A stretch of DNA of 64,000 nt from Macrostomum hystrix (taxonomy: Eukaryota > Animalia > Platyhelminthes): NCBI GenBank assembly GCA_950097015.1, contig CATNEN010000002.1, positions 4,216,001-4,280,000 on the forward strand, written 5' to 3'. Both the position numbers and the translations under genes were made by a program. How positions within the stretch are numbered: position 1 is the stretch's first letter; every line of letters begins with the position of its first letter. Below, piece by piece: positions 2,962 to 54,646 of the stretch. The notes under the pieces were generated by a model, which was given only the letters and a program-made list of their open reading frames with translations, had not been told where the DNA came from and ran no database searches.

Positions 2962-5900
2962 ATGAATGACACAGATCACCTCGATCTGTACAATATTGGT
3001 GAGGAAGAGGACTTTAAAACCGAGCCTGAGGTAAGCCAAACTTTAATATTTGTATCATAATTTCATAGACAACCATTTTGCATTACTGTTATATAATTTT
3101 TATGCAACAAAGAATTATACAACTGCAACTCACAAAGCAAAAAATCTTGAAGTAAGCTCTAGAACGTGCTGGGCCTGAATTTTATAGTTAAGAATTATCC
3201 TAAAGGTTAGGCCTATGGCTTCTTTCATGTCACTGCTGCCCAAAAAAAATAATTATTAGAATTTGCTAATCGCTATAGCTTATTGAGACAATTAATAGGC
3301 CATATAAAAAAGTGGGCATAAATTTACTTTTGTTTGCAAATTTTTTTTCTTCTTTTAAAATCTTGAATGATGAAGTGGATAACGTGACTTAATGTCAACT
3401 GGTAACAAAACTGGTGGGAAGCATTTTTAAATGGCACTGAGCATTGCTCAGTTCTGTTCAATGCAGTCCTGACTGTCTCAGATTCCTAAACTGGGTAATA
3501 TTGACAAATCCAGTACAGAATGCTGCCAAAAGCCTTGTCAGGCCCCAGGTGAAGGCATTGCCATAGATACTTTTGAGTGTGCGATTCAAAGAGGGCATAG
3601 CTAATGCCATGCCACATAGTCTCGTCCGTACTTGCCATCACTTCCATCAGATCCCTTGAGTTCATATTTAGTTCTGTCAGTGCCTGTGCTGGCAGAACTT
3701 CATTTGGTGGCACAATCCACAATGGTCTTGGGGGCTGTCTAGCCATTTGCAAACCAGAAAAGTCTCAAAGCCTCTAAAATCCAAACTATAGTGAGGGCTC
3801 AAAAAAACTCAGCCAAATTTTTGTGTCCAAAACAACTTTACACGACTAGGCCCTACTATGGGCCATAGACAACTCCCATTCGTCATTCCATGTCATTGGC
3901 ACCATTTTAAAAGAGGAAAAAAAATTGTGAATAAAAGTATATTTACTCCAAAAAGTGTTATAGGTTCTATTAATTTAAACCTAAACACAATTTTAAAACT
4001 TTTACATATTCACAAATTTACATGGCAGAGCTTATTCTCATGTTCCCATGCCGATAATTTCAATTTTATTTACACAGATCTGTGCCAATAATTTTCTGCT
4101 TATCCACATGGCAGCTTACATAAATAGGTCTACAACTAAGAAAATTGTTCAGCAAAAGCATTGGGACATCGTTTTAACTCTCAAGAATTTAACGCCTAAG
4201 TCCAAAGGACCCACAATTGTAAAGATTTGCAGAGGAAAGCGAGGAACTAGTTAGCATGCTTTTGTCAAGTTTCTGAAACCTTAATTTCGTATGGGAACAA
4301 GTCAGTAGTATTATTTGCGCATGTGCATCATATCATATTTCAAGCGTGTCTGCAATACAAATGTCAGTGCGATTCTTCATGCGATTGTTAGCAACATTAC
4401 ATGTTATTCAAAATTAATGATTCTTTGAAATTTAACATGTGCATTGCTTGTAATTAATAGAGGCCCTACTACAGGTACTGCAGGTTCTGGAAAACATGTA
4501 TGGCCAGTTGTATATATAGTACATGAAAACTGCTACACAGTTCCTGTAAAATATGTGCTTTTTAAGTTCTTAAAGTTATCGGCAAAACAAGCTGCCGTGT
4601 GGATAAGCAGAAAATTATCGGCACGGATCCGTGTGGATAAAATTGAAATTATTGGCATGGGACCATGGGAATAAGCACTTCCTATTTACATTGCTACCAG
4701 AGTCCAGACTAATAATGGTTTCTGATTCTTTCTATTCTATTTGTATTCTGTCATCTTTTGTGATAATAACTTTAGAATAGTTTAGTCTCTAAAATAAACT
4801 TCATACAAACTCATTTGCCATATGCAGAATTATTAAATTTTTTTCTGCAGAAAATGTCATATTGATTGGTCACTTACTTACTTTAACACCCTTTATATTC
4901 ATAATTTAGGTCAGGAAGTGGTCTCACTTAGCCCTTAGGCATGGCTGGGTGTCTGCAATGCACTTAAGATAAAAAGGGTTTTCAGGCCAAGAATTTTGTT
5001 GCCTTGTCTTGCATAATATTAGCTTATTATTATTTATAGTAGATATTAAAATATGTATAATCTTTATATTAGTATGTGAAGCAATCCTTTGTATTATTAT
5101 ACCAAACCATTTTCTTTTTCTCTCAACTCAATTAGGAGCCAGAGAATGATGATGGTGACATGGCTGGCAGTGGCTCTGCATCTGAGCAGCCAGTCTCCGC
5201 TGGCAATGGCGCCAGCTCCAGCAAGAGCAGTGGTGTCATCAAACTGTCAGGCATCACTGGCAGCGCCAGCTCTGTGAACGATTCTGGCGATTCCAATCAG
5301 GCAGCCTCTAGCACCAATGGTGGCCAACAGCAGCAGCAGCAGTATGGCCGCAAGGTGGCCATGTATGTTGGCAATCTAACCTGGTGGACTACAGATGAAG
5401 ACATGATGTCCTGCATGCGCGAACTAAACATCAGCGATGTGATTGAGATCAAATTTCACGAGAACCGGCAGAATGGCCAATCCAAAGGCTTCTGTGTGCT
5501 GGTTGTCGGCTCGGAGCAGTCCAGCCGCACCGTAATGGATCGCCTGCCAAAGATGGAGCTGCATGGTCAGCAGCCGATGGTGATGCACTGCAACAAGCAA
5601 ACTCTGCAGTACTTTGAACAGCAGGCAGGTGGCAGCAATGGCGGCAGCAGTGGCGGCGGTCGAACCGGCGGTCGGGACGACGCCAGTGCTAGTAGCGGCG
5701 GCGGTGGCTCGCAGGGCGGCATGCAGATGCAGCGTGACGGCTATCGTGGAGGCGGAGGCCAGGGCATGCGACAGTCGGGCATGCAGCAGGCTCAGTCTGG
5801 CTACAGGCAGCAGCCGCAGCCGCTTATGGCATCGGCTGCCCAGCCACAGTCTCAGCTGGCCCAGCAGATGGCCCAGCAGATGCAGCAGCAGCAGGCGCAA

Positions 5901-7091
5901 ATGCTAGCTTATCAGCAGCGCATGGCTATGGCCGCTCAGCAGCAGCCGCCGCCGCAGTTCATGCGTCCCGGCATGCCGCCACCGCAGGCTGCGCCTTTCA
6001 TTCGGCCGCCTGGCATGATGATGCCACCTGGAGGGCCGCACATGCCGCCGCCTCAGCAACCGATGCAGCCAATGCCCGGCATGCCACCGCCCGGCTCAGC
6101 AGCTGGTCCCGGCATCCCAGGCGGCCCGCCGCAGGGCATGATGATGCAGGGCCGGCCGCCTATGCCCGGCATGCCGTCAGGTATGCCTGGTATGCCACCG
6201 GGAATGCCGCAGCAGCAGAACCCGCAGGGCGGTCCGCCACAGCAGCAGCCGCCGCACAGCATGCCCGGCATGCCGCCACCTGGAGCAGCTGCGCCCCACA
6301 TTAATCCGGCATTCTTTCCCAGGCCACAAATGCCAGGTGGACCGCCCGGCGCTCCTGGCATGCCGCCGCAGCATATGCAGCAGCAGCAGGGCCAGCCTCA
6401 GCCTGGCATGATGCCCGGCGGTCCGCAGCAGCAGCAGCAGCAGCTGGACATGTTCGGCAGGCCCATAGCGCCAGGAGCATATATGCCGCATCCGCAGCAG
6501 CAGCAGCATCAGCCGCCAGTTTCCATGCCTGGTGTCAACTCAGCAGCTCCGGGTATGCCGCAGTCCACTAGCGCTGCAGCCGCCGCCGGCTTGTCAGAAT
6601 CTGACGCCGAGGAGATGCTGGCAAGGAACAAGACTGTCTGCAGCTCCGCCATCAGCCGGGCAGTTCAGGACGCTGCAGCTGGCGACTACGCCGCTGCCAT
6701 CGAGACCCTGGTGACGGCCATCTCGCTGATTAAGCAGAGCAAGTTGGCAGGCGACGATCGCTGCGCCATCCTCATCAACTCGCTGCAGGACACTCTCCAC
6801 GGCATCGAGAGCAAGAGTTACGGCAGTAGCCAGAAGACCAGCGGACGCAGCGGTGGCGGCGGCGGCGGCGGATCCAGCAGTCGCCGGCGCCGGTCCTACA
6901 GTCGGTCTGGCAGCGACGAGCCAGACGATCGGGTTGTCAGCGGCAGCAGCAAGCGATCGCGCAGTCGCAGCCGCGACGGCGGCGGCAGCAAACGACGCAG
7001 GAGCCGAGACCGCGACCGCTACGACTACGAGAGCGGCGGCGGCGGCAGCAGCAGCCGGCGTCATGGAGAGCGCTCGTCCTACAGGCACTAG
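2962..7091 (+). CDS. CPSF6: Cleavage and polyadenylation specificity factor 6 (CFIm68)-like, join(2962..3030,5136..7091), 674 aa
   Basis: Exon 1 is MNDTDHLDLYNIGEEEDF (cf. MADGVDHIDIY), with donor GTAAGC at 3031 and an in-phase acceptor TTAG at 5135. The protein has the RRM MYVGNLTWWTTDEDM...ENRQNGQSKGF, a Pro/Gln-rich region with PHINPAFF, the conserved helix block SSAISRAVQDAAAGDY...IETLVTAISLIKQSK...LQDTLHGIESKSY, and an RS/RD tail. Confidence 0.93.
3401..3903 (-). mobile_element. Internally deleted Merlin derivative in CPSF6 intron 1; carries an 86-codon in-frame N/C-terminal fusion ORF (3746-3486)
   Basis: MARQPPRPLWIVPPNEV...LNMNSRDL aligns with the N-terminus of the 398 transposase (MAGQPAAPGFIIPLNEV...LNMSLQDL). 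HGISYALFESHTQKYLW...FGSILYWICQYYPV* aligns with its C-terminus. The ends begin GGTGCCA and GGTAACA, and TGTCTATGGCC lies 32 bp inside the 5' end. No TSD found. Confidence 0.7.
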
Positions 7092-10222: not shown

Positions 10223-12807
10223 AGGATAACTCATTGATTCATGAGGATCTGAGAGGAGAGCTCCCCGATTCATGAGGATCTGAGAGGAGAGCTCACCCCT
10301 CATTGATTCATGAGGATCTGAGAGGATAGCTCACTGATTCATGAGGATCTGAGAGGATAGCTCATTGATTCATGAGGATCTGAGAGGATAGCTCACTGAT
10401 TCATGAGGATCTGAGAGGATAGCTCATTGATTCATGAGGATCTGAGAGGATAGCTTACTGATTCATGAGGATCTGAGAGGATAGCTCATTGATTCATGAG
10501 GATCTGAGAGGATAGCTCACTGATTCATGAGGATCTGAGAGGAGAGCTTACTGATTCATGAGGATCTGAGAGGATAGCTCATTGATTCATGAGGATCTGA
10601 GAGGAGAGCTCATTGATTCATGAGGATCTGAGAGGATAGCTCACTGATTCATGAGGATCTGAGAGGATAGCTCACTGATTCATGAGGATCTGAGAGGAGA
10701 GCTCATTGATTCATGAGGATCTGAGAGGATAGCTCACTGATTCATGAGGATCTGAGAGGATAGCTCACTGATTCATGAGGATCTGAGAGGATAGCTCTCT
10801 GATTCATGAGGATCTGAGAGGATAGCTCACTGATTCATGAGGATCTGAGAGGATAGCTCACTGATTCATGAGGATCTGAGAGGAGAGCTCACTGATTCAT
10901 GAGGATCTGAGAGGATAGCTCACTGATTCATGAGGATCTGAGAGGATAGCTCACTGATTCATGAGGATCTGAGAGGATAGCTCATTGATTCATGAGGATC
11001 TGAGAGGATAGCTCACTGATTCATGAGGATCTGAGAGGATAGCTCATTGATTCATGAGGATCTGAGAGGATAGCTCATTGATTCATGAGGATCTGAGAGG
11101 AGAGCTCACCCCTCATTGATTCATGAGGATCTGAGAGGATAGCTCATTGATTCATGAGGATCTGAGAGGAGAGCTCACCCCTCATTGATTCATGAGGATC
11201 TGAGAGGAGAGCTCACCCCTCATTGATTCATGAGGATCTGAGAAGATAGCTCACTGATTCATGAGGATCTGAGAGGATAGCTCATTGATTCATGAGGATC
11301 TGAGAGGATAGCTCACTGATTCATGAGGATCTGAGAGGATAGCTCACTGATTCATGAGGATCTGAGAGGATAGCTCACTGATTCATGAGGATCTGAGAGG
11401 ATAGCTCATTGATTCATGAGGATATGAGAGGATAGCTCACTGATTCATGAGGATCTGAGAGGATAGCTCACTGATTCATGAGGATCTGAGAGGATAGCTC
11501 ACTGATTCATGAGGATCTGAGAGGATAGCTCACTGATTCATGAGGATCTGAGAGGATAGCTCACTGATTCATGAGGATCTGAGAGGAGAGCTCACTGATT
11601 CATGAGGATCTGAGAGGATAGCTCACTGATTCATGAGGATCTGAGAGGATAGCTCACTGATTCATGAGGATCTGAGAGGATAGCTCACTGATTCATGAGG
11701 ATCTGAGAGGATAGCTCACTGATTCATGAGGATCTGAGAGGATAGCTCATTGATTCATGAGGATCTGAGAGGAGAGCTCACTGATTCATGAGGATCTGAG
11801 AGGATAGCTCACTGATTCATGAGGATCTGAGAGGATAGCTCACTGATTCATGAGGATCTGAGAGGATAGCTCACTGATTCATGAGGATCTGAGAGGATAG
11901 CTCACTGATTCATGAGGATCTGAGAGGATAGCTCACTGATTCATGAGGATCTGAGAGGAGAGCTCACTGATTCATGAGGATCTGAGAGGATAGCTCACTG
12001 ATTCATGAGGATCTGAGAGGATAGCTCACTGATTCATGAGGATCTGAGAGGATAGCTCACTGATTCATGAGGATCTGAGAGGATAGCTCACTGATTCATG
12101 AGGATCTGAGAGGATAGCTCATTGATTCATGAGGATCTGAGAGGATAGCTCACTGATTCATGAGGATCTGAGAGGATAGCTCACTGATTCATGAGGATCT
12201 GAGAGGATAGCTCATTGATTCATGAGGATCTGAGAGGATAGCTCATTGATTCATGAGGATCTGAGAGGATAGCTCACTGATTCATGAGGATCTGAGAGGA
12301 TAGCTCATTGATTCATGAGGATCTGAGAGGATAGCTCACTGATTCATGAGGATCTGAGAGGATAGCTCACTGATTCATGAGGATCTGAGAGGATAGCTCA
12401 CTGATTCATGAGGATCTGAGAGGATAGCTCATTGATTCATGAGGATCTGAGAGGATAGCTCACTGATTCATGAGGATCTGAGAGGAGAGCTCAATAATTC
12501 ATGAGGATCTGAGAGGAGAGCTCAATAATTCATGAGGATCTGAGAGGAGAGCTCAATAATTCATGAGGATCTGAGAGGATAGCTCACTGATTCATGAGGA
12601 TCTGAGAGGAGAGCTCACTGATTCATGAGGATCTGAGAGGAGAGCTCACTGATTCATGAGGATCTGAGAGGAGAGCTCATTGATTCATGAGGATCTGAGA
12701 GAATAGCTCACTGATTCATGAGGATCTGAGAGGAGAGCTCACTGATTCATGAGGATCTGAGAGGAGAGCTCACTGATTCATGAGGATCTGAGAGGAGAGC
12801 TCACTGA
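10223..12807. repeat. Tandem minisatellite, 31-bp unit GATTCATGAGGATCTGAGAGGATAGCTCACT, ~83 copies
   Basis: Head-to-tail units without spacers. Variants include ACT/ATT, GGATAG/GGAGAG and an occasional short CCCTCA-type insertion. Confidence 0.97.
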
Positions 12808-20329: not shown

Positions 20330-22568
20330 ATGAGTCGACTCGCTATAGATAGGTTGCGTCATCAGCAAGAGCAGGAGCAGCAGCAGCAATCGAGACTTCC
20401 ACCACCGCAGCATCGAGTGATTCGAAGGCGGCATACGCCACCGTCGCTTTCACTGACGGCGCCGCCACCGCCTCCGCGTTCGCCTTCGCAACTGCGTCTG
20501 CCGCAGTCGCAGCGGCAGCAGTTTTTGCCCTTCTCTGCGTCGCATCGAGAAGATTCGCTGACATCTGGCATTGTCAGCGACGAGAGCTGCTCAGTCGTGG
20601 CCGGAGCCACCGCCGCTGCCAGTTGCGGCCCCTCAGTCCATTTTGGTGACACCCTGGTTCATCTTATACCGTCGCGATGCTCAGACGCATCGTCAACAGA
20701 GGAGCACGTCGATAATGACGACATCAGATACAGAGATTACGACGAAAATGACGACGGCATCGACTTTGAAGAATGTGACAGCGACGAAACACAATTTAGA
20801 GTCTTGAAATCCACATCGCCGAAGTTTGTTGATATTGACATCGACGCCGTGGGCGACTCGACCGAGGTCGAACAGCAGAATCTCGAAGACAGCGTCATGC
20901 GGAGGGTGGCCACGGATGTTCAGGCTAGCCGAAGGTTCTACCGACTGTGCTACAACGTGGACAGCGGCAGTGGCAGCGGTAGCTGCAGAGGAACCGGAAG
21001 GGACACTGTTGGCACCTCTGCTATGGCTCAAACAGGTGAGACTCAGAATTCAGTACTGATATCAATATCATGAATTGGTTTATACTCAAACAACAAAACA
21101 TTTTCATTTTCAATTAGAAGCGCCAGCAGATGAACTCGCCGGGTCGCTGTATTCCTCAGGCAAGTGCATTCGATGGCTGCAGCACCAGCAGCAGGAGCCT
21201 GAGCAGCGGCCTCAGCTGCCAGAACGAGTCCTCCTGCTGGCCTTCAGCTACCTGGACTCGCCCCAGCTGTGCCGCTGTGCAGCTGTTTGCCGCACCTGGT
21301 ACCGCCTGGCGTGGCACCCGGCCCTGTGGACTGGCCTCGAGATCCTCGACTCCCGCCTGGACGCCAACGCAGCCATCGACAGCGTGACGAAGATTCTCAG
21401 CTACGCCAGCTACCCGCACTGCCTCGGCCTGCTGCGAGTCAGTGTCGCCAATTCCGTCACGCTGACGGACAGAGCGCTCAGCCTGCTCGGCTCCAGGTGT
21501 CCACGACTTCAGCGGGCAGAGTTTCGTGCCTGTCCTCGACTCACGGGCCTCGGCGCGCGGGAACTTCTGCACGGCTGTCGACGCTTGCACCGGCTGCGTC
21601 TGGCCTCCTGCCACGGTGTCACCCTGGCACTGCCAGTGACAGCGCCGCGACTCGACAACCTGGAAGTGATAGACTGTCGCAGCATTGACGATTCCAGCCT
21701 TCGAGCTCTAGGCGACGGTTTGTGTCCGCGTCTCGCTCGTCTGAGCTTGCGAAACTGTCCAGCTGTCACTGACGACGGCTTGGCTGCGCTTGGTGCCGGC
21801 GGAGGCTGTCCCGGACTGAGGGAGCTTCGCCTGACCAACTTCGGCTGCGCTATCAGCGAGGTGGGTCTCGAACGCCTGTTGAAGCGCTGCGGAAAGAGGC
21901 TTCGCTGCCTCGCGCTGGTTCGCTGTGACGGGGTGAGTTGATGTAACTTTGGTTGCATGAGCACAGCCATGTGCACTTGCTATTGTCAAGATCGTAAAAT
22001 ATATTCCAAGAAGACAATTATAATCAGATAGTGTATTTCAACACATTTCAGATCAACGACGCCGCTGTCTTTCGCATCGCTGTGCGAGCAACCAACCTGC
22101 ACCAGCTGAGCCTTCGCGACTGCTGGCGGGTCACCGATCTGGGACTCGAGCGCTTGGCCCGAGGCCTCGGACCGGCCGGGCCGCCGCTCGAGCTGGACGC
22201 AAGCGGTTGCGACATCACCGACGACGCTGTCGAGGCTCTGGCCAGCGCTGGCGGCTGCGCTGCCAGATTAGTTAGACTGTGCCTGCGGGGCTGCGATTGC
22301 ATCACTGATCAGGTGAGTGGTAATCTTCCTGTCTGTGAACTATCTCTGTCTAGATTGGTGTTCGTTTTAGATGAAGAGTTGTTATAAATCATGTTTTGGA
22401 CGTTACCTTCGAACACCAATGCCGCAGGGTCTCTCGGCTCTCGCTGCCCACGGTTGTCCCCAGCTGACCTACCTGAACTTGCTGGGCTGCAGCGTGTCGC
22501 CACATGCAGTGCTCAGCGCAAGGTCCGCCCTGCCAGCAAGCGCAGTCGTGCACTTTAGCCTGGCCTAA
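20330..22568 (+). CDS. FBXL7: F-box/leucine-rich-repeat protein, FBXL7-like, join(20330..21035,21118..21932,22052..22312,22428..22568), ~640 aa
   Basis: The F-box is LPERVLLLAFSYLDSPQLCRCAAVCRTWYRLAWHPALW (the FBXL7-type RCARVCRRWYxLAWDPxLW). Cys-containing LRRs follow (LSLRNCPAVTDDGL, LSLRDCWRVTDLGL, LCLRGCDCITDQGL, LTYLNLLGC). All three introns are GT-AG and phase-compatible. The start codon and the paralog assignment are inferred. Confidence 0.85.
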
Positions 22569-24780: not shown

Positions 24781-26750
24781 TCATATTTAGTTTAATTTCT
24801 GGAAATATTGTTTCAAATTTTTTTATTATCCACGTTAACTGATTTCGAGACATGTTGTTTAATTAACCATCGCTTTTAATTATATTAACTTGAAAATCAA
24901 ACATTTAAATTCTGATCAGTTAGTCGCTGTGTCACTACGCACTTAGCAACTATTTGATGGAATGAACGAATTAATACATGCATAGAGATTCTATTGGGTG
25001 TCAGCACAGGAGCTTTTGTGCGATTGATCCAAAATAAAAAAAAACGGTGTCGCTATATTACAGCATGCATTGCTAATGCAATGAGATGCAAACTATCAGG
25101 TCCCTTTGGGAATGGATTGATAGAGAAAACTTTGCACGACTGTCTACACCACAAAAAATCGATTTCAGGCGAGTTAGAAAATCAAAATGCGGATGAAAAC
25201 GATGGAATAAGATATTGAAAAGAATAGCATTCTCGTAAAAGTGCTGCTAAGTTCTAATCAGTTGGCTAGAATCATTCGAACTCCAAGCTTCATAGTGTAG
25301 GTCAGTGCTTTCGATGCAAAGCACCAGAGTCAAATGTTGGTTTTTTCACAGCCTCAAATAATTACATTGCGGAGCTAAACCTGATTAAATATTTTTCCGA
25401 AAACCAATTTCGGTCCGTTGATGCTGCTGTTTGACAGGGCAGCTGCTAAGCAGGGAAGATGAAATTACTGAGCGATGCGATATAATCCTCCACTCGCTCA
25501 GCCCACGGGAACCAAAGAAGGAAGAAAAAAGATTTATCACTGCCATGTGCAATGGCGTGATTGATTTCTTCGAGATAATTTGCCTATTTTAAGTCGCAGC
25601 GCGCACTTGTCTCTCACGCGGGGAGGCCCTGCAGCTCGTCGTATTTTCCAGTTAGGACTGACGACGAGGCGTCACTCGAGAACGGAGCTGCGTGGTATGA
25701 TAAACTAGTTCCACCCATGATCAACTACGACTCTAATGCAAACTGCGTTTTCACCAGGTTTGCTGGCTGGCCTTGGTATGGAATAGCCGAGACCAAATTG
25801 TCTGTCAATACACGGAGGAAATCAAGGAAGTGAACACTCCGAAATGGTTCTTGTACAGCCGCAATTGGCTTTCATTGCTGCTGCTTCCCTTTCATATGGT
25901 ATGCGCTTAAAGTGCGTTTTATATGTGAATTATTCTAGCCTGAACTGAAGCACAGAGTTCTGTTTTTCTTCTGTTTTCTCTTCACTTCGAAAACATGGAC
26001 AATCCAGACTTCATCCCACCGCTGCCACCAGGAACCCGGAGGAGCTACCGTTAACTCTAAAATTTTAATGTCCCTTTTGAATGCAATCAGAATAGCTAGG
26101 GCTTATTGTCTTCTAGAACTTGTATAATCCCGATCTCCCATAACTACCTGGAGGAAAACCTGGCCTTAAGCATGTCATTCTATAATGACCTATTGATCCA
26201 GTTTATATGAAGCAAGGCCAAATGGTTGGTTCTTTTATACTAAAAAAGTTTCACTTCTAAATTGGCTTTCTAACTAATGAGTCCGAAAGTGTTGGCCCAC
26301 AATCTCTCTGCATTGCCTGCATTCTAAATTGCAAACGCGAGATCTTGTGTGCGCGAGCTAAAGATTATGAAGCATCTGGCCGACAGCCAATAGGAAATGG
26401 GAAAGGAAAAATGGCGGTTTCTAGCACTCGCTGAAGGGATAGAGATGGAGAGATGAGAAGGGGAGACGCATCGCTATGAGTAGATTCTTAAAATCCCGGG
26501 TCCAAGCCACGACAGGCGACTCGCAGCCAGAGAGATTTTCTTCATTCCGCGCCTCGTTTATCATCATTTCCGATCCATCTGGAGAGTTGCCACTGTTTCT
26601 TTCAACTACAAAAGCTTGGATCCCTCGAAGACACTGTTGCAGACTAAGAGCTCATTGGGATTCGCACTACCAGCATCAGGTACGCTCAGAGCAGTAAACC
26701 AGACAAAAAAGAAAATACTTCAATTCTAACTTTCTCACCAAACGCCAGCA

Positions 26751-27656
26751 ATGCGGTCGCTGCTCATCCTGACGATTGCTCTGCTTTCCGCGATGATGTG
26801 AGTTCAAGACAGCTCAGAGTTTCTTGCAATCTCATTTTCGAGAGAGATTTTCCTAGCCCTAAGAAATCTTTCTAGGAAGACAAAAAATACTCGTACTAGC
26901 ATCCTTTGTTAGCCGTACAGTAAGAAATTTAACTTTAGCTTTGACGGTCGATTTTGTATAGGGCTTCGGGGTACAATAACTGTTAGACATGACTGGACTT
27001 GTTGAAGCCTCATTGGTTGGAGAAATATGTGGTTAATGCGGTCCGGTTATTCAAAAATGGATAGCTCATTTCGGGATTATCAATTTCAATTGATACATTA
27101 GTTTAATTACTTCATCATGTGTAATACATGTTAAAGGGTCTTGATAAGATGATAATTGATCACTTATTTAGGTTGCTTCTACTATATAGACATCTTTCTG
27201 TTTAATTTCAGATGCTCAGTTTCGTGCGCTGATCATCATCACGAAGATTACAAGGCTCTCCAGCAGGCTGATGATAGTTTGAGCTCCGACAAGCGCTTCA
27301 CTAGGTACCCCGACTTCATGCTCGACCGTGGCATCTTGAAGAAGCGCTTCACGAGGTACCCGGACTTCATGCTCGACCGCGGCATCCTGAAGAAGCGCTT
27401 CACGAGGTACCCGGACTTCATGCTCGACCGTGGCATCTTGAAGAAACGCTTCACGAGGTACCCGGACTTCATGCTCGACCGCGGCATCCTGAAACGCTTC
27501 ACAAGGTACCCGGACTTCATGCTCGACCGCGGCATCCTGAAGAAGCGCTTCACGAGGTACCCGGACTTCATGCTCGACCGCGGCATCCTGAAACGCTTCA
27601 CGAGGTACCCGGACTTCATGCTCGACCGCGGCATCCTGAAGAAGCGCTCAGAGTAA
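26751..27656 (+). CDS. Neuropeptide prohormone, join(26751..26797,27212..27656), 163 aa: signal peptide plus 7 copies of FTRYPDFMLDRGIL flanked by KR/KKR
   Basis: Exon 1 is MRSLLILTIALLSAM with donor GTGAGT at 26798 (phase 2). The acceptor TTTCAG at 27211 is in phase and completes a signal-like MRSLLILTIALLSAMICSVSCA. An acidic spacer and dibasic convertase sites follow. All differences between copies are synonymous or whole-codon. Confidence 0.9.
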
Positions 27657-28696
27657 ACAAAACAGTGTGCCGAGTGACGATTAGCAGACTGCTATTTTCA
27701 AAAGATGAAAGGAATGCTGTTTTGAAACAAATAGTTTGCACTGACCTTCCATCTTTTTGACTGAAACCAGAGCTTAATTAATTCCCGCCAAACATGGTAA
27801 AAAGCAGTTGGCTTACCCCCATTCTAAAGTGACGCCGTACAACCGAAAGCAGAGAAGCAATATGAAGCTCTGACATATCGACCCATAAGCTCAATAAACA
27901 TATAATCAGAAGAGAAAGTCCGCAGTTCGATTCAACTGCCTGGCTTTCTTTTAAGCCGCAATACAGTTTGTTTGTTACCTTGCTCTCTTAAATTTATTTG
28001 GATCGTTACTCTAATAAATAGTATAGAATAGTATAGTTGATTCGTTGTTCCTATCAAGTCTCTATCTAGTCTCTATACCTCTAGAAACTTCATTTTGTAC
28101 TAGCATAAAACAACTAGCCTCCTGGAGTTAGTTTGGAGCACAATATTCAAATAATACCTCGCAGAAGGTCAACATGTAAGACTGTTCGATAACAAGACCT
28201 CCCAGTTTCACCGCCGCACTGTTGCGTCCGGGGTTCGGGAGATGCACGTCCTCATATCACGGCGATTCGGCACGTCTTCCTTTTTGGAATAAAAAAACCC
28301 ATGAGCAGTCTCAATGTGGACGGCTCGAACTCGAACTCAATGTGGACGGTGTTCTGCTTTATTATCGAATCTACTTGTCCTGCTTTGCCTTTTGCTATGC
28401 TGCTGCTATAGCCCCCATCTAAAGCCAAGTGGTTTCTGGTTAGTTTTTTTCGAATCCCTCGAATTCGCTTATCTATTTCTGTGGGCAAACATTCAGTGGG
28501 CGGGAGCTGTTGCCGCATCTTTGACTGTATTTAATGTGAGTTGGAAGGCTGGAATAAAGTTTAGCACAGAGTGCCTCTAATCTAGAACCTGCGATAGCTT
28601 CGTTCTACTTTGAAAACCGGCAGTGCACAGGCTGCAGAAGTGCTTCAACAGAAAACCCGCAGCTCAGCATTGCTTGCTCCAGATTCTGAATACCCG

Positions 28697-31600
28697 ATGA
28701 GCATTCAACCACCCGAAGCGGTGGAAGCCGACCCTGTGTCAGTGGGCAACGGCGATCAAATCCCGGCTTCAGCTCCGCCTGAGCTTCGCACAATTATTAG
28801 ACAGAACAGAGGCCGACACTCTGGCTGGCAGCGGCTGAAGACATTCATCGGTGACAGCGGCGGCGGACGCGACACAGGCAGCAGTGGCGGTGGCGGTGGC
28901 GGTGGCGGCAGTGGTGTCGACAGCAGCAGCAGTGCCACTGTCGGCGGTGGCGCCAGACCTCGTCGAAAAACAAAGCGTTGTACGGCCGATACCGAGTCCT
29001 CAAACTGTTCAGCCCTGAATCGACTGGATCCTAATCGCGACACTATTAGCAGCCTGCTGCACACGCAGCCACCGGCAAACTGTGCAGAGAGCTGGCGCTT
29101 CTTGGCCATCCTGTTCAAGTGCCTGTTTTCATCCAAGGTGTTCCCAGACACGCAAAGTGAGCAGCTCTATCAAATGTACTTTCGCAGGCTGAACCACCGT
29201 CTGCTACTGGTGCTGGTGGCGACCTTGGCTCTGCTCAGCGTTGGCGCCGCCGTCACCCAGCTGCCGCAGATTGTGCGCGGACTATCGGCAACCTCCTTGC
29301 TGAAGCTGTGCATCAGCGCTGTCGCCGGAGTCGGCTTCTGCGGCCTCCTAGCTGGCATGCTTCGCTGCCGGGTTGGACTAACGAGGCAGCAGCACCTGAG
29401 CTACGGCCTGATGGTCTGCTTCCTGCTGCTGCAGCTCGCCAACCTTGTGCGCCTACCGGACGACCAAGATCCCCTGTGCTGGAAGACCAGCAGCGGCCTC
29501 TTCACCAGCTGCTTGCTAATCATCATTGCCTACCTGTTTCTGCCCCTCAGAGTGCGCAGCCTGCTGGGCTGCTGCGGCCTTGTCACTGCTGTGCACCTGT
29601 TGACCCGACTCACTGGCATGGACCGGCCTGACTTTGGCGCTGGGGTGAGCACTTTATCTGGCGGCTGCAGCTGAATAGTGCATCGGGCCCAACAGGGCTA
29701 GGTGTAAATATTACCTTTTTTCAATGCGAGTTTACTGTTGACAACTTTCATCATAAATGTGGCGTTGCTTTCACCAACCAATACCACGGTTGCCTGTTTA
29801 AATACCAAGTTTACATACTCAAGAACTCGGGCCAACTTCTTCTGAAATAATAATCAAGTCGCCAGCCCTTCATGCCATCGAGATATTCAACGGCTCTGTT
29901 TTTTTAGGGAAAACTATTTTTAGGGAATCCATGGCCAGCTAGAGGCACTCTGCTGACAAGTGCTGACGGCGTTGGGGTGGTAACTGATTGGTTGACAGAC
30001 TCGAAGAGGGTCTTGTGGTTGAGCCACGTCCCATATTGAGGCTTGATCAGAGAAATGGGAGAAATTTGCCTCATTTCTATTATTGATTGTTCACAAGCTA
30101 CATCTTATCTACGCCTTTCCTCGTTAGTTTCATTATCCGAATCAGTCTAATTGAGTACTAAATAGTGAATGAGATTAATGTATCTGATTCGGGAATAAGT
30201 GTTTGAAGATAATATAACGGCTAAGCTGCAGAATATTTTATTTCGGCAGGAACCTATAGTACAAAGACGTAGAAACACTGAAGCAGTTTTTTTACTGGAA
30301 TTTTTCTCAGCACTGCTCAGCAGAGGAGTTTTTCATCTAATATAAAATTTAGTTTCTGTTGCTAGAGCTTGATAGAATGCTAGCTTGGTGTTATTGACTG
30401 CTCGTTCTAGAAAACTGCTAATTGACCTAGCTTCCAAAACAAAATGGCTTCCTTCTGACTGACCCTAACCTTAATCGAGAAGTCGAAAAAATAGTCGAAA
30501 GGGGAGACTTGGCACGACTTGGCAAGGTCACCTAAGGTCACTTCATCGGAGCGTCAAATCACGCCACTTCCCGTTAAGTGTGCCAAACTTGAGACTGTCA
30601 GCTGATTAGGCTTACGGCGAATTCTAAAAAAAAGTGAGCAAACGACTCGATATATAGCAATAACGAAAACAGCGACTATGACAGTTTATAATGGGCTGTC
30701 CAACAATGATATCGCTGTCTAACTAATAGCGCCTAGAGCAACTCCGACCAACTCGATGCTCACAGGCCTCTAATTAGCACCGACAAGCCGCGCGCCGTAT
30801 CCGGCCCGCCCGTATCTGGCCCATTTGCTGTCCCCTGCTACGCCAATCGAGCTCCGGTCTAGCTACTTTACCCCATTGACGAATCCCCTCAGGGGTGTTC
30901 GCAGTGTCTTTTTTCTGTCCTCGTCCTCATTTTGGAGCTCTCACTGGCCGGGATAAAATACTTTTAGATAGATTTGGATACTGAAATTGTGAATGTGTAA
31001 GAATGAGTAGCAAAGACCAGAAGTCATGGGCTGGAGTGGATTAGGGGCATGAACTGGTACGGATTAGTGAGCTGATCCGCGTCAGCGCGAACGCCCGCCA
31101 GCTCGGTAATTTCCTCTTTAAATTTCTCCTCAAAGTCCATCTTTGTCTCAATCGACGCTCTCCAGATGAGTTCTTAATTATTTATTTAACACGTTTCTAA
31201 AGTTACAAAGCTGATTTAAAGAAGCTAAATTCACTAAAAACCAAAAAATAGTTTCTAGGAGCCAATTCACCACACATAATTTGATTTTAAGCTCAATTTC
31301 GTTTAATCTCGTTTCCTGTCAGTTAAACATAAGATGCTTTTAGAATGTACATCGTGTTTCAGTCTCCAAAATATTATGAAAGAATATGACTGGTCCATGT
31401 ACATTGAATTTTGTCCCTTTCGCCAATCATGGAGCCAGTTGCCGATCGAATGTACATAGAATTTCATCCCCGTCTATTATGAAGCCAGTTGCCTATTGAA
31501 TGTACATTGAATTTCGTGCCCCGCCTAGCATAAAGCCAGTTGCCTATCAAATCTACATTGAAATTTGACCCCGCCTAGCGCGTGAAGTCAGTTGCCTATC

Positions 31601-34600
31601 GAAAGTACATTGAATTTCTTCCCCCGCCTAGCATAAAGCCAGTTGACTATAAAATGTACATTGAATTTCGACCTCGCCCAGCATTAAGCTTGTAATTAAC
31701 GCACATTGAACATCCTCCCCTTGAAAAACTTATCGCTGGACCCACTTTAACAATCCTCAGTTGGCAGCGAACGCCTTCACCCTACTGGCCGCGAACATCA
31801 TCGGGTTGTTTGTACACGGACCAGTTGAAATGGGTCGCAGACAGACGTTCCTGGAGACGCGACGCTACGTGGACGCCAGGCTGCACGCTGAACTGGAGAA
31901 GGACAAGCAGGTGGCAAATCTTTTGAGGGGCTGTCCATTGCTTTAAAATGAAATGGAATTTAGAATTCGCATCCTAACCGTATGCTGTCCGTTGTGAGAA
32001 TGCTTGAGAACTCAGTTCATGGTTTTTGGGGAAGCCAGACAACCGGCTGGGAAAAGAAAATCAGGAAGTCCCACTGTGGCATCATCAAAAAGGTGACAAT
32101 GTCTGTCGATCGTCATGGTTAAATATCCCCTTTATCCTGAAAGCTTAGGATGCATTTTCAATTCTGCCCCCAACTCCCCGACACCTGGAGTGCCTCATTT
32201 TCCCCAATGCGATCCCCTGGGTCTGATATTGAATTTTCACATCTTTTACCTCCTCTCATCGACGCCGACAATGGCAGATCTGATTACCCCTGCCAGTAGA
32301 TAGCTCTGTGGACCACGGTTGAGTAAGATTTGAGCAGAGATTAAGAAAACTATGAGATTATTTCTAGATAGTTTGCAACCAAAGCTTAGTCTCAGAATTC
32401 ATCTGTCTCTCTTCTCTCATTGATCAATGCCAAATCAATTTTGTTGGCAGATAGAAATTTGGTCGGGTCCCTGTGCTATTCAAATATTTTCAGGGGCCAA
32501 GAAAGATTAGATCAATATGAAATAGGAACCAGGTGTTATTTTGGGAAAACTAAATAAACTTGAGCTGTTGTCCTTAAAACAATAATTTTCAGGATCGTCT
32601 AATTCTGTCTGTACTGCCGGGTCACGTGGCATTACCGCTGCTTTATCCGGAGAAGAATCAGTATCCAAAGTCGGTGTTTAACAAGGTCTACATTCAGAGG
32701 CACGATAATGTCAGGTAGGCCAATTTTTATTTACTTCTAACTTTGAAGAGCCAATTAGCGAATAGGGGAGTAGGGGAACTACTTCTTGAAGCTCCGATTG
32801 GCTGAAGAGAAAAAACATTTTTGGCCCAGCCAATCAGAGCGCATGGAATCACTTTGGGAACAGTCGATGACTCATAAAGTCGTTTGAAAAATGTCCAAAA
32901 AGCATGGAACTAGGGCCAATTAAATAGCTCACCTGCTCTGAGATGTAGGTCTGGCTCACCGAACAGCATCAGGTGATAGGGCCGGGTCCTTGGGGTAGAA
33001 GGAAGGAGTAAAGTCGGAGTCACGTAAAGAAAACACACGAATCGTACATTGTATAGTCGGTTGAGCAAACGGTTGATGCCAGATAACAGGAATGGAATTG
33101 GAAGACTGAATAAAACTTGGTCAACAATCGCATATTGCTGGTGAAGAACTTTTTTAGAAAAGTTTTTTTCCAGAAATTTTTCTACACTGTAAAGGCATGC
33201 TATTACTTTCTTGTAGGGATGTAAGAAGAGGGGCTTGGGAAAGAAAATTTGGAAAGTATTTGACTGTCACAAATGTCTAAAAAGGCGGACAGCCCTCTTG
33301 AGAAATGTAAGACCAGGTGTGATGTTGTCAGTGCATTTTTTTTGGTGTATTTTCTGAAGATTTTTCACAAGGACACACGCACGTGTGTGTGGGCTTTAAG
33401 CCAAGTTAGTAAAACCTGGTTTGGGGCTGATGACCTCAATCACTGTTCTCCGTCAAACCCGGAATCTCCACTGCAGTATCCTCTTCGCCGACATTTGCGG
33501 CTTTACAACTCTCTGCCGCCAGAACGACCCCCAGTTCATCGTTGGCCTCCTAAACGTGCTGTTTGCCCGATTCGATCGACTAGCCGAGTCGAACAAGTGC
33601 CTGAGAATCAAACTGCTTGGAGACTGCTACTACTGTGTGTCCGGACTGCCGGAGGCGAGGCCGGATCACGCGAGGTGCTGCGTGGAGATGGGCTTGGATA
33701 TGATCTCTACCATATCGTGAGTCTGCTCAATGGCTGGTTGGTTGGTTGGTTGGTTGGTTGGTTGGTTGGTTGGTTGGTTGGTTGGTCTCAATTTGCTTAT
33801 TTAGAAGTGGCACCACCTGATACTCTTGGCATGAAGACCAATTAATTGGCAGTCTTTGAGTGTGTCGAATACGCTAGATTTCCAATCACATATCTGCATC
33901 TGCATAAGAGCTTATACAGCCTATCTATCATGTTACAGTAACTTAAGCATGTTCTCACAATTTGAGAATTAGATAAGACGTGGCCTGCAACTGACTTTTC
34001 TCGGAGTCATAAAATCAGGTTATAAATAAATAAACAAAATTTAAAGCCGGTCACCGATTGTCGTTTTCAATTATTCACAAAGAAAATTTGGCTGACCAGA
34101 CTACAAAATGTGATCGAAAAGGAACCAAAAAGGAAAATTTTCTGTGGGATTAAAATAGTATTATATTCCCCTGACGTAAGGTCTTTGATATGCTTTGATT
34201 TACCCAGATGAAGCAAAATTATGCTTCGAATTCATGCAACGCTGGAGGATTAACCGTTCCACAAATCAATTAGCTCGTATATATTTTACTACTTCTCGAT
34301 CCGCTTCATACTCGTATAGAACTTTTTGAGCACAGTAGGCTTAAGTAAGGTAGGTTTCGGCCTTGCAGGTTTGAGCACTGTAGGTTTCAGCACTGAAGGT
34401 TTCAGCACTGTAGGTTTGAACACTGTAGTAGGTTTGAGCAACCTAGGTTTGAGCACTGTAGGTTTGAACACTCCGTTTCAGCACTGTAGGTTTGAACACT
34501 GTAGTAGGTTTGAGCAACCTAGGTTTGAGCACTGTAGGTTTGAACACTCAGTTTGAGCAATGTAGGTCTGGGCACTTTAGGTTTGAGAATTTTAGGTTTG

Positions 34601-38900: not shown

Positions 38901-41900
38901 AATAACCTCCCCTCAATCAGACTCCCCAGGTAGACTCAAACAGACTCGAAATGCAACCTCATCTTTGAGTGCAGGACACTTGTTCTTTAACATTCATATA
39001 TCATCATATAGGCTTAGAGCTATCAATCAAATCTATTGAAGACACGCCTAAGGAAACTAGAAATAAAATCTGAAACACCTCGACCCCTCCCCAGCTCAAT
39101 GGCGATGGTGCCAATTTACCTGTTCTCATTCGTCACGCTGATCACGCTGTTTGCCTGCGCTGTGGCTTTCACAACCGACCGAATGGTAAATAAAATAAAA
39201 AAAGAGAAAATACTCACTCTCGTCTACTTACAGTAGAAATGTCAGAAACTCATCTTCTAAGTTTAAGTTTCTTATCTGAATGTTTTTTTCAATTTCAGAA
39301 AATTGCCAGCAAGAAAATCTGGTCGATTTTTGTCAATGGATCAATTCTGATTGGAATGGTTGCAAATTTTGTTTCAATTTTGGTACCGAAGGTGAGTCAA
39401 TGTCTTGGTTCGACTAGGGAACAATGCTTGACCCGCAGTGAGAAAAAATTTGTCACAATATTATTTAGATAAATTGACACAATGTCCTCCAGATAGATAG
39501 ACACAATGTCCTCCATGTAGATAGACACAATGTCCTCCAGATAGATAGACACAATGTCCTCCAGATAGATAGACACAATGTCCTCCATGTAGATAGACAC
39601 AATGTCCTCCAGATAGATAGACACAATGTCCTCCAGATAGATAGACAGATTGTCCTCCAGATTGATAGATACAATGTCCTCCATGTAGACAGACACAATG
39701 TCCTCCATGTAGACAGACACAATGTCCTTAATGTAGAGAGACACAATGTCCTCCATGAAAATAGACACAATGTCCTCCATGTAGACAGACACAATGTCCT
39801 CCATGTAGACAGACACAATGTCCTTAATGTAGAGAGACACAATGTCCTCCATGAAAATAGACACAATGTCCTCCATGTAGACAGACACAATGTCCTCCAT
39901 GTAGACAGACACAATGTCCTTAATGTAGAGAGACACAATGTCCTCCATGAAAATAGACACAATGTCCTCCATGTAGACAGACACAATGTCCTCCAGGTAG
40001 ATGGCCACTATTTATTTATACATAATAATAATAATACAATATAATAATTTCAGCTATATGAAGAGCGATGTGACCTTCAGAATCACATCGAAACTGTTTA
40101 TAACAACAATTGGACATTGTTCTGCACGAACAGCACGAAGGTTGACAGCCTGTGCCATCGCCCAGATTTGGCTGTTCCCGAGGTAAATCGGGTGGCATGT
40201 TGGCAGAGGGTCAAAGTAGCTAGTGGTTTGAGCTGGAAACTTATAATTTCCAATCGTTGTACTTAATTTAATCAGAACCCAAATCCCCTTAACTATCACT
40301 TCAATTCCAGTACACAATGTACTCAGCGTCGCTGACAATTATAAGTCTGACATGCTTCACGTACAGCACTTTCCTGTGGAAGTGGGTCGTAGGTCTTCTG
40401 TTCTCAGGAGTGTACCTGGCGGCCAGCTATTTTGCCTTCTATTCCGAGTTTCAAAATGTGGATCTGGTGCAAAAGCAATGCTGCGACGATAGGGACAATT
40501 TTCCGCTTCTGTGGCTCAACTGCGGCTTGTTGATCCTGTCGGCGCTGTTGATAGTGATTGTTCAATCTCACCTGGCTGAAATCACCGTCCGTCTAGACTT
40601 CCTGTGGAAATTCCAGGCCTTCGAAGAGAACGAGAAGACTGAAGAGATGAAGCGAAGGAACCAGGCCCTGGTTGACAACATTCTGCCCCCGCATGTGGCC
40701 AGTCATTTCCTCAACTCGGAGGACATCTACTCAGAGCAGTGCACTGAGACCACGGTGATCTTCGCGTCCATTTGCAATTTCTCCGAGTACTACCTGGAGG
40801 TGGCCCAAACTGACGAGATTGTCTGCTGCCTAGTACTGAACGAGATGCTGTCAGACTTTGACGACCTTCAGAGGCAGTTCCGCTGCGTGGAAAAGATCAA
40901 GACGATTGGCTCGACCTACATGGCTGCCGCTGGACTGTCAGCCGACACCAGGTGTCGCAATGACACCAGAGCTCATGTTGCTCAAACTGCCGACTTTGCG
41001 CTGGCTCTGCTGCGCCTCATCTGCGTGCACAACAGGCACCTGTACACCTCCTTCAAGATGCGCATTGGTGAGATGTCACACAATAATAATAACATTCGCA
41101 GGAGGGCTGTGGGCAATGACACAAAACTTGATGACAGTAGATCCACAGCCAGCGAGCGAGGAGGCAGTTCTGCCCATTCCACTGACTCCTGAGCACACAC
41201 GCACAGAGATACTGTACGCAGGCACACACTCACACAGGCGTGTACATCTGCCCTGACTTTCTCATCGTCAGACGTCAAGATCCCAAGCCTTCTCTCGGCG
41301 CTCTAGGCCTCGCCGCGGAATCGAGCTCAGGGACGAAAGGCTAACGCGTTAGACCGCTCTGCCACTCACCCCTGGAGATGCCCCATTGGAACCAAACGTG
41401 CGCGTTTAGGAGCTGGTAGATTGCTGAGTGACAGAGTGATCAATGTCCTAGATTGCTGAGTGACAGAGTGATCAATGTCCTAGATTGCTGAGTGACAGAG
41501 TGATCAATGTCCTAGATTGCTGAGTGACAGAGTGATCAATGTCCTAGATTGCTGAGTGACAGAGTGATCAATGTCCTAGATTGCTGAGTGACAGAGTGAT
41601 CAATGTCCTAGATTGCTGAGTGACAGAGTGCATGATCAACGTCCTAGTGATCGACTTCGCGGCGAGGCAACATTAATTTTTTGTCTCAGATAGAAGTACA
41701 AGTGTATGTTGTGTGAGTAGTATGTGACTCACACAAGGGTGTGAGTAGGAGACGTTACAGATTGGATTGAACGCTCGAACCATCTTCCGCATCAATCGCA
41801 GGCATCAATCACGGAGTGGTCATCGCTGGCGTGATCGCCACCCGCAAGCCGCAGTATGACATCTGGGGTGACACCGTGAATATCGCATCTCGGATGGAGA

Positions 41901-48841: not shown

Positions 48842-49993
48842 TCACGATGGCGCCGCCTGTCGCCGCTTCTTCGCACTGTCGGATCCGTTGGCCCGGACTT
48901 CCTTGGGCTTGTCTGCTGCCTCCTTTTCCTCCTCGGTTGATTCCTCCGAGTCCGATCGGGAGTCTTGCCGATTCCCGCTGAGTACAACTCTCAGAGCAAC
49001 CTTGCCGATAAAGTAGGACCAGATGATGTGCAGCGCCTGCAGAACAAGCAGGCAGGCCTGCAGACAGCGGAGAGCCGGGCTGCTGCCGCACTCCGAGTTT
49101 AACTCAGTCAGGGCTGTCAGGACAATGCGGAAAGGATACAGAATCAGCCGGGTGACGAACCAGACCGTCATGAAGGTGACAAATGCCGGGTCGCTGAGCC
49201 AGCGCAGCTTTGTGTAGCTGCCAATTTTGGCAAGGTGGAACAGCGGATCGACGGCGTCGTGCAGCGCCAGGATTAGCGCACCAATGCGGGTGAAGTTCAA
49301 GGACCAGCTGAACACCATCAGGATAATGGTGATGCAGTGGTGCAGCAGCATCTCTTTGAAATCCTTGCGCTTCGTGTCGTTGAACACGGTGGCCAGGGCG
49401 GTCCAGTAGTAGCCTAGCTCCACCATGTAGTACCAGTACACATCATCGGTCACGTGATGCTCCGGCCAGCCGCGCCAGATCTCGATGGTGCTCCACAAGT
49501 AGGGCTTGCTCCACAGCACAGCGACGCCATAGAAGAAGCTGATTAAATAGAATGTCAGCTGCCAGGCACTTTCGGCGAATTTCGTTAACTGGCTGGAGCG
49601 GTCGCGGTTGCGACGGACTCGGAACCAGTTGCTAACGAACAGCTCCGAGCGATCAATGGTCTTCGACAGGCTCTGATAGTCGACGCTCTCGCCGCTGCGC
49701 TTGCTACGCTGGAAGGCTTGTTCGAGACGGCGATCCTCCTTGCTCTTGGGCTGGTAGGTGACCGGGTCTTGCAGTCCCAGCCGACAGCCGAGCGGTCGAA
49801 ACAGCAGCCAATCGAGCAGGTGACGAATGCCAAATAGGACGGCCGCGCAGACGAACGAATACTTCAGGTCGGACAGGCGGGCTTTGAACACCGACGGGGT
49901 TGGATCCGACTGGCGTTCCAGACTGCGCCACGTGTAGCCGGGAGGCAGCCAGAAGCTCTCAGTCCAAAAGAAATCATAGAGAAACTCGGCCAT
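48842..49993 (-). CDS. CERS: Ceramide synthase (LAG1/LASS family, CerS5/6-like, with Hox-like and TLC domains), 383 aa, intronless CDS
   Basis: It has the N-terminal FWTESFWLPPGYTW, a homeobox-like VSNWFRVRRNRDR, KFAESAWQ, the Lag1 motif RKDFKEMLLHH...RIGALILALHDAVD, and the C-terminal DSRSDSEE phospho-motif. Confidence 0.96.
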   Translation of the reverse strand: MAEFLYDFFWTESFWLPPGYTWRSLERQSDPTPSVFKARLSDLKYSFVCAAVLFGIRHLLDWLLFRPLGCRLGLQDPVTYQPKSKEDRRLEQAFQRSKRSGESVDYQSLSKTIDRSELFVSNWFRVRRNRDRSSQLTKFAESAWQLTFYLISFFYGVAVLWSKPYLWSTIEIWRGWPEHHVTDDVYWYYMVELGYYWTALATVFNDTKRKDFKEMLLHHCITIILMVFSWSLNFTRIGALILALHDAVDPLFHLAKIGSYTKLRWLSDPAFVTFMTVWFVTRLILYPFRIVLTALTELNSECGSSPALRCLQACLLVLQALHIIWSYFIGKVALRVVLSGNRQDSRSDSEESTEEEKEAADKPKEVRANGSDSAKKRRQAAPS

Positions 49994-53352: not shown

Positions 53353-54646
53353 CACAGACCAAGAAATATAACTAGACTGCGCATGAGGGTAAAAAAAGTT
53401 GTGCCTTTTTCCTAGTAGGAAAAGTGGCACCCCCCACGATCGATAATTGTGCCCGGGCCTTTCTTCTTACCCTCAGCCAACTCAGCTTGTCGGGGTCTCT
53501 TTTTTCTTTATGTTCGTAACTAGTAAAAATTCAGACTCAGTAAGAAATAAGATTAACAAATTAACAACTACAGATTCATTTTTAATTCATCTAGAAATTT
53601 TTGTATCTAGAATGCCGCTGCTTCGTTTAACATGCACTTGGCCTTTAGATCCAGAATTGCGTCCTTCAATGTTTTGGCTCTCTGTTTAATTTGCCTGTGC
53701 TTTGAGCGCAGAGATCGAATTTTTCTGTACTTGCTCTGTACCGTCCGACGCAGGATTTCAATGGCCTTAGCACTTTTCTTAGATCTCTTATGAGCAGCCA
53801 AAAGCCTATTGTATCTGCAACTCAGGTTTTTTAGGACTCTCACCTTTTTTTCGAATTGTTCTCTGGCCACACAGTTGGCATGCAGTTCTTGTAGGGGTTG
53901 TTCTGGTTCATCTGCCTCCGTGTCAGTTGGCTGAGCCTTCGTCTTGCTACATTCCGGCGCTTTCAAAAATGCAGCAAAGTCAACTTCCTGAGCAGCGGCG
54001 GCGGTGGCTGTTTTTCGCTTCTTTTCAACAGGCAGCAGGCGGTCAGGGAGCGTCGGGAAGATAGAAGGAACAGCATTTGGATACAGCCGCCTTCTTGTGG
54101 TGGGCAGAAAGCCGGCTAGTTGTTCCTTGAAGCAAGACTCTGCAAAGTGGACCGAGCAGACTTGGGTGGTCGCCGATGGTTTGAACTCCGACGCAACGCA
54201 ACCAGCCACTTTCTCTTCATTTCAGTCTCCTTTGGAAAAAATGGAAGGACACTGCCGGAGACATTGACGAGTTGTTCGAGCAGCCTAGAGCGCAGCAAAA
54301 GCTGCCGTGACTTTTTCTGCTAGGCAGTTTTGAAGAATTAGATTCTTCCATGGCAGTTCGATTTGGTGAGGATTGATCTAGATTAGACTGAAGCAGCTTG
54401 CTTTGTATTTCAAGTATGTGTTTTATAAGTTTATATTTTTGGCCCCAGACCACGTTAATATATAGCTATATATCAACGCAGGCGAAAAGAAAAGCAGGCC
54501 TGTACCCTAACTTCTTGCCCAAGCACAATTATCGATCGTTTTCGAGTAGGGAGAGAGGGACCATTTTTTTCCACTGTCATTTGGTCAAAAACAAGCCCAA
54601 GAAAGAAATGCGGGATGCGCAGTCTAGTTATATTTCTTGGTCTGTG
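53353..54646 (-). mobile_element. 1294-bp internally deleted P-superfamily (THAP) DNA transposon with perfect 32-bp TIRs and an 8-bp TSD (GATGAGAC)
   Basis: The TIR CACAGACCAAGAAATATAACTAGACTGCGCAT lies at 53353-53384, with its reverse complement at 54615-54646. GATGAGAC lies at 53345-53352 and 54647-54654. A perfect 17-bp subterminal inverted repeat lies at 53436-53452 / 54523-54539. Confidence 0.92.
53607..54351 (-). pseudogene. THAP-domain + coiled-coil N-terminal part of a P-element (THAP9-like) transposase, with two apparent 1-bp deletions
   Basis: Three frames join to give MEE...FCCALGCSN...VSFHF/FPKETEMKRKWLVALRR/EFKPSATTQVCSVHFAESCF...RRRLYPNAVPSIF, which is the C2CH THAP signature with the AVPxIF box. 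A basic coiled coil follows. No RNase H catalytic core is present. Confidence 0.88.

Follow-up and report, generated by a model that had tools for sequence, protein, structure and literature searches.

A two-exon locus of Macrostomum hystrix predicted to encode a secreted precursor with seven copies of one 14-residue peptide

Gene organization and neighbouring features

We analysed a stretch of 64,000 nucleotides of the Macrostomum hystrix genome (contig CATNEN010000002.1, positions 4,216,001 to 4,280,000), referred to below as the window. All coordinates are those of the window unless indicated otherwise. The locus described here carries the following features:

26727..26729, plus strand: in-frame TAA, seven codons before the ATG, which closes the frame upstream
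26751..26797, plus strand: coding part of exon 1, 47 nt, made up from the ATG of 15 codons plus 2 nt
26798..27211, plus strand: intron of 414 nt, GTGAGT...TTTCAG, phase 2, 35% GC
27212-27656, plus strand: exon 2, with the spacer, the seven-copy array, KKR-SE and TAA
27212..27296, plus strand: start of exon 2, with ...SVSCA as the predicted signal-peptide c-region, followed by the acidic His-rich spacer, which has the first KR at its end
27297..27638, plus strand: peptide array, seven identical 14-residue peptides of 42 nt each
27639..27656, plus strand: 3' end of the coding sequence, with the final KKR, a Ser-Glu dipeptide and the TAA stop
27893..27898, plus strand: AATAAA, candidate polyadenylation signal, 237 nt past the stop; nearest AATAAA 3' of the gene on this strand

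The ATG, as read from the window DNA, lies at position 26751 on the plus strand, 461 nt 5' of exon 2. Exon 1 encodes MRSLLILTIALLSAM and leaves a trailing 'AT'. Its product starts Met-Arg-Ser, with Arg2 directly after Met, and continues into a hydrophobic run of 12-13 residues (mean Kyte-Doolittle value of 2.67 across residues 4-15); exon 1 is predicted to carry the n- and h-regions of a signal peptide. The donor reads GAT/GTGAGT, with its intronic part starting at 26798, and reading through it leads to a TGA one codon later. The acceptor, ...CTTTCTGTTTAATTTCAG, is pyrimidine-rich and followed by the exon after its CAG, the last base of which is 27211. The frame of exon 2 has no ATG 5' of the repeats and meets two in-frame stops just upstream of 27212. 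Since the split codon AT/A encodes Ile, exon 2 is in phase with exon 1. The initial annotation of this DNA, made from the letters alone, had proposed that a 47-bp exon is joined in phase to the exon starting at 27212. This proposal held at the sequence level, as the donor, the acceptor and the split Ile codon were all located at the positions given above and the protein of Macrostomum lignano presented in the next section is colinear with the spliced product. At the other end of the gene, the polyadenylation role of the AATAAA at 27893..27898 is putative, this hexamer being frequent in the window (78 matches).

The spacer part of exon 2 comprises 28 residues, is acidic and His-rich, and ends in KR. 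It is followed by seven copies of the 14-mer FTRYPDFMLDRGIL, with units starting at 27297, 27348, 27399, 27450, 27498, 27549 and 27597. All seven copies are flanked by dibasic KR or KKR sites; the linkers between copies read, in order, KKR, KKR, KKR, KR, KKR and KR, and KKR-SE comes after copy 7. Every copy ends in ...G-I-L and is immediately followed by K, and the Gly that serves for amidation is absent before the basic sites. Tandem Repeats Finder assigned the array a period of 51 nt (7.1 copies) and a higher-order period of 99 nt. Hence the arrangement initially described for the product, namely a predicted signal peptide, an acidic spacer, seven dibasic-flanked copies and a KKR-SE end, is present in each of its parts.

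Several other coding features lie in the window. Two adenylyl cyclase exons were identified on the plus strand, at 28610-29674 and 40317-41192, encoding a Pfam AC_N domain and then the cyclase catalytic domain; the first of them follows the prohormone gene at a distance of about 950 nt, and long minisatellite-filled stretches separate the two exons. Also on the plus strand are a 333-residue ORF at 259-1260 with an ISXO2-like (IS1595-type) DDE transposase domain (E 6e-16) in an animal genome, an uninterrupted 643-residue ORF at 5160-7091 that combines an RRM with a CPSF6-like RSLD domain and is possibly an intronless gene of the CPSF6/7 type, and an ORF at 21075-21941 with an F-box plus LRR. 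The minus strand carries a ceramide-synthase-like ORF with a TLC domain (48842-49993) and an ORF with a THAP domain (53607-54209). The minisatellites of the window, many of which produce long spurious ORFs, include an 82-copy 31-mer at 10223-12807 and an unrelated array at 31397-31689 that also has a period of 51 nt.

Conservation in Macrostomum lignano and variation between copies

Exon 2 was searched against 5.8 billion proteins with a word index and against 1.84 billion representatives with HMMER, with no length limit. Both protein searches revealed the same single true relative, PAA83947.1 of M. lignano (UniProt A0A267GET4, BOX15_Mlig001732g5), a protein of 114 residues deposited as 'hypothetical protein'. 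The protein encoded in the window was itself absent from the searched collections, in which only the M. lignano gene model was found.

The two precursors are orthologous. The pre-pro part is 44 residues long in both species, and the spliced M. hystrix model is colinear, residue for residue, with the independently modelled M. lignano protein. The leader of PAA83947.1 is identical to the exon 1 product at 10 of 15 positions (pair E 6e-5), and its spacer has the same length as that of M. hystrix with 11 identical residues out of 28, so that leader and spacer are only 38-67% identical. Both precursors have the same dibasic KR/KKR sites and the same KKR-SE end. PAA83947.1, which remains uncharacterised and unnamed, differs in having four copies of the peptide instead of seven; three of the four match the 14-mer in full, and the last one carries Asp in place of Gly.

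With flanks that are about 49% identical, the probability that 14 residues stay unchanged by chance is about 5e-5. Neutral arrays that are homogenised separately in each species are expected to diverge. The combination of a conserved peptide with diverged flanks in M. lignano thus constitutes the main evidence for the gene, for its splice junction and for purifying selection. Judged from this comparison, the peptide and its cleavage sites are under purifying selection between the two Macrostomum species.

Minisatellites abound in the window (50 Tandem Repeats Finder rows), and many of them have a period divisible by 3 and can be read over long distances without a stop. The array could in principle be one more open minisatellite, and the upstream 'exon' a chance ATG followed by a GT. 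We consider this highly improbable, as the same peptide array is found in M. lignano together with a colinear leader and spacer, as the array contains no non-synonymous variants whereas these make up 50-100% of the variants in control satellites, and as the exons have a GC content of 55-57% compared to 35% in the intron. Furthermore, the precursor locus is single-copy in the M. hystrix genome. A search of this genome with exon 2 returned 92 matches; besides the gene and its antisense frame, most of them contain stop codons, and the six stop-free matches that were inspected proved to be minisatellites, open in several frames and with many amino-acid differences.

Variation between the copies points in the same direction with less force. 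The 42-nt unit has four variable sites with five distinct variants (ACT/ACG/ACA, CCC/CCG, CGT/CGC and TTG/CTG), all of them synonymous. In the linkers, AAG/AAA is likewise synonymous, and length differences consist of whole K codons. Because only about 22% of sites are synonymous, the ratio of 5 synonymous to 0 non-synonymous variants in the sense frame is unlikely to arise by chance (about 5e-4). In contrast, six neighbouring satellites with a period that is a multiple of 3 exhibited 50-100% non-synonymous variants in every frame. The claim that the copies of this array differ only synonymously, unlike the satellites around it, was thus borne out for the pattern itself and for the contrast with the six satellites. 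As an argument for coding, it is weaker than originally presented: the events are few (five variants), the 99-nt higher-order period indicates recent pairwise duplication, so that the identity of the copies partly reflects their youth, and one antisense frame scores almost as high, with 4 synonymous changes against 1 conservative change.

This antisense frame raises the question of the coding strand. An ORF on the minus strand (27634-27248), encoding repeats of MPRSSMKSGYLVKRF..., is open over 128 codons, and its ratio of 4 to 1 arises in a frame that has its third positions in common with the sense frame; for this reason the variation test alone hardly separates the strands. Conversely, the minus-strand frame begins inside the repeat and is devoid of a leader, a splice partner and cleavage sites, and the protein deposited for M. 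lignano is the sense product, whose conserved N-terminal leader lies outside the repeat. It is the leader, the splice sites and the protein of M. lignano that decide the question in favour of the plus strand, and coding from the minus strand is extremely improbable.

Together, these observations indicate that the locus is a real two-exon gene, predicted to encode a secreted precursor of the prohormone type of about 162 residues.

Relatives beyond the genus and a family of environmental repeat proteins

Outside Macrostomum, neither the word index nor HMMER revealed true relatives of the precursor. HMMER returned 26 matches at E values up to 0.001. Six of these, beyond the orthologue, were examined and corresponded to repeat artefacts (TPR proteins, satellites) or to unnamed environmental proteins. 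A Pfam scan of exon 2 gave only a sub-threshold HTH_45 match, considered as noise. No short transcript fragments were recovered when the word index was queried with the initial 60 residues encoded by exon 2, a result that says little given that tandem repeats assemble poorly. Six 4-residue words of the peptide were absent from the supplements of the planarian prohormone catalogue (PMC2953531), from the npp set of Taenia crassiceps and from a Schistosoma mansoni set. A full-text literature search for the peptide gave no match, the coverage of flatworm catalogues being incomplete; the one 6-residue word that did match in the literature falls in an RNA-dependent RNA polymerase of a nematode and has no bearing on the peptide. 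When the M. lignano protein was used in a language-model feature search, all look-alikes were neuropeptide precursors, belonging to several unrelated families and with scores of 0.84-0.88. We treat these look-alikes as a lead and not as evidence.

The initial annotation had matched the peptide to no named neuropeptide family. The Pfam and HMMER searches, the planarian, cestode and schistosome lists and the literature all agree with it, within the incomplete coverage of the catalogues. Its suggestion of a new or lineage-specific signalling system fared less uniformly: relatives were found only within Macrostomum, but the M. lignano protein was already in databases, unnamed. As far as can be seen from these searches, the family is apparently restricted to Macrostomum and the peptide undescribed, even though an orthologue had been deposited without a name.

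One of the environmental proteins, P0025, requires closer consideration, since it was matched by HMMER at E 9e-4 over the whole library. P0025 is part of a family of at least 37 unnamed environmental proteins (P0025 and P0027-P0062) drawn from ENA, JGI, Logan and a marine eukaryote catalogue, one of them originating from run ERR1719232. All of them combine a signal peptide with 5-15 repeat units that end in [GA]-x-[LM]-R-S-[LT]-R-S, often followed by a C-terminal tail of the form Y-D-x-L-A-L-R-Y-L; the units follow the pattern ...P-D-[YF]-L-R-N-x-G-I-[LM]-R-S-[TL]-R-S. These proteins look like prohormones of planktonic animals, judging by their layout. A literature search for the motifs of the family gave no match.

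The M. hystrix gene could belong to this wider undescribed family of secreted repeat peptides, most of which come from marine plankton. Such membership would be a point of classification and is compatible with the prohormone explanation. Besides the overall build and the unit length (16-18 residues in the environmental proteins), some family members are closer to the Macrostomum peptide than P0025 itself, with PDF or PDY, three residues, GIL or GIM and a basic residue, and some have RSTR where Macrostomum has RFTR. The pattern P-D-[FY]-x4-G-I-[LM]-basic is common to the Macrostomum peptide and some members. A profile-profile alignment with hhalign gave a probability of 94% and a score of 53. 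However, when the 14-mer was permuted and the basic linkers were kept, 4 of 300 permutations reached the observed score (p ~0.013), which is far too weak because P0025 was picked among 1.8 billion proteins. Other matches at similar E-values are plain repeat artefacts, again TPR proteins and satellites. Moreover, a 20-bp junk minisatellite of the same genome reads RDYLSDRGII by chance, with no similarity at the DNA level.

This minisatellite lies at G000:C11:6018345-6019740 in the M. hystrix assembly. Its period of 20 bp gives, through the three frames, a 20-residue unit, RDYLSDRGIIYQTEGLSIRQ, and its chance likeness to the core of the peptide is a warning on E-values that are driven by repeats.

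The units of the P0025 family also differ from those of the Macrostomum precursor in how they are bounded, being flanked by R-S-x-R-S there and by KR or KKR here. Macrostomum has G-I-L followed by K-(K)-R-F-T-R instead of R-S-[TL]-R-S, and its precursor ends in KKR-SE instead of a tail of the P0025 type; neither R-S-L-R-S, the best-kept element of the family, nor the C-terminal tail Y-D-x-L-[AT]-L-R-Y-L is found in it. After the controls by permutation, by the chance satellite and by conserved elements, homology with P0025 was not established. We regard membership of the gene in this family as rather unlikely and true homology between the two as doubtful, on the alignments above. Still less probable is the specific proposal that the 14-mer represents the first recognisable flatworm member of an undescribed family of secreted signalling peptides defined by P-D-[FY]-x4-G-I-[LM] with basic or R-x-x-R flanks. 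If this were true, the peptide would belong to an old signalling system that is absent from all catalogues searched.

Proposed processing, role and comparison with known prohormones

For this precursor we infer transcription, splicing, signal-peptide cleavage, processing, neuronal expression and signalling from sequence, and the following route is proposed. The leader would bring the precursor into the secretory pathway and would probably be removed after Ala22 (Ala22/Asp). Cleavage after residue 22 is suggested by the presence, in the two species alike, of Ala at position 22 (-1) and of a small residue at position 20 (-3). Proprotein convertases of the subtilisin type would then cut after every KR or KKR, and a carboxypeptidase would trim the basic residues, yielding seven copies of FTRYPDFMLDRGIL with a free C-terminus. 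As no Gly precedes any of the basic sites, the C-terminus is expected to be free and not amidated, in agreement with the non-amidated peptide predicted by the initial annotation. Furthermore, the preceding Arg forms with F-T-R an R-x-x-R site (RFTR), which makes a second cut possible; this cut may yield the 11-mer YPDFMLDRGIL. The calculated [M+H]+ is 1743.889 for the 14-mer and 1339.671 for the 11-mer, and the net charge is 0 and -1, respectively.

With respect to the processing enzymes, the proprotein-convertase P domain (PF01483) gave 13 matches at about nine places in the genome, all of them over the family cut-off. In M. lignano, the nervous system expresses a homologue of PC2, and hatchlings in which this homologue is knocked down do not survive (PMC4490696).

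The released peptide would most likely act as an intercellular signal, a neuropeptide or peptide hormone, through some receptor. On the strength of the precursor's layout, we consider a neuropeptide or peptide hormone precursor the most likely identity of the product, with a probability of roughly 0.68. Regarding the original designation as a neuropeptide, the prohormone architecture on which it was based is present, and the label itself follows from that architecture.

The same convertase-processed gene could instead serve an exocrine or reproductive function, its product being a gland secretion, a seminal-fluid peptide, a pheromone or a defence peptide. Repeats flanked by dibasic sites and preceded by a signal peptide also occur in non-neuronal peptides such as yeast alpha-factor and amphibian skin peptides, and by analogy the predicted signal peptide and dibasic-flanked repeats found here would fit a non-neuronal secreted peptide as well. 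The seeming confinement of the family to a single genus is common among fast-evolving reproductive or ecological peptides. Yet the peptide is fully conserved between two Macrostomum species while its flanks have diverged, unlike fast-evolving reproductive proteins. With a net charge of 0 for the 14-mer and -1 for the 11-mer, it also differs from cationic antimicrobial peptides, which argues against an antimicrobial role, and the language-model look-alikes, a weak indication, are neuropeptide precursors. We therefore hold a non-neuronal product to be unlikely, and the neuropeptide or peptide hormone reading is retained below.

Macrostomum is used in the laboratory to study regeneration, stem cells and sexual conflict, and RNAi and transgenesis are established in it. 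A peptide that M. hystrix and M. lignano share without change, and of which each precursor carries seven or four copies, makes a good candidate for a signal in behaviour or physiology. Peptidomics, in situ hybridisation, RNAi and receptor deorphanisation thereby gain a concrete target. The locus also illustrates that small two-exon prohormone genes are readily overlooked, or left unnamed, in such genomes. The gene does not alter the knowledge of how prohormone systems work.

Among known systems, the non-amidated peptides of the pedal peptide/orcokinin type are 13-20 residues long, come from multi-copy precursors, contain acidic residues and have a Gly in their second half. The M. hystrix product, as predicted, resembles them in being a non-amidated multi-copy peptide of that size with acidic residues and a Gly in its second half. 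The pedal peptide/orcokinin family is defined, however, by an N-terminal F/L-D-x-I/L core and a C-terminus of the family type; the M. hystrix peptide lacks both the F/L-D-x-I type motif and the aromatic C-terminal part, and Pfam and HMMER gave no link. Compared to the planarian NPP/SPP and FMRFamide-like precursors, the M. hystrix precursor has no amidation signal and no Pfam match. Conversely, it shares with multi-copy invertebrate prohormones (planarian NPP/SPP, Collins et al. 2010, PMC2953531; FMRFamide-like) a predicted signal peptide, a spacer and tandem copies of the peptide, and resembles them further in its dibasic convertase sites between copies and in being encoded by a small gene with few introns.
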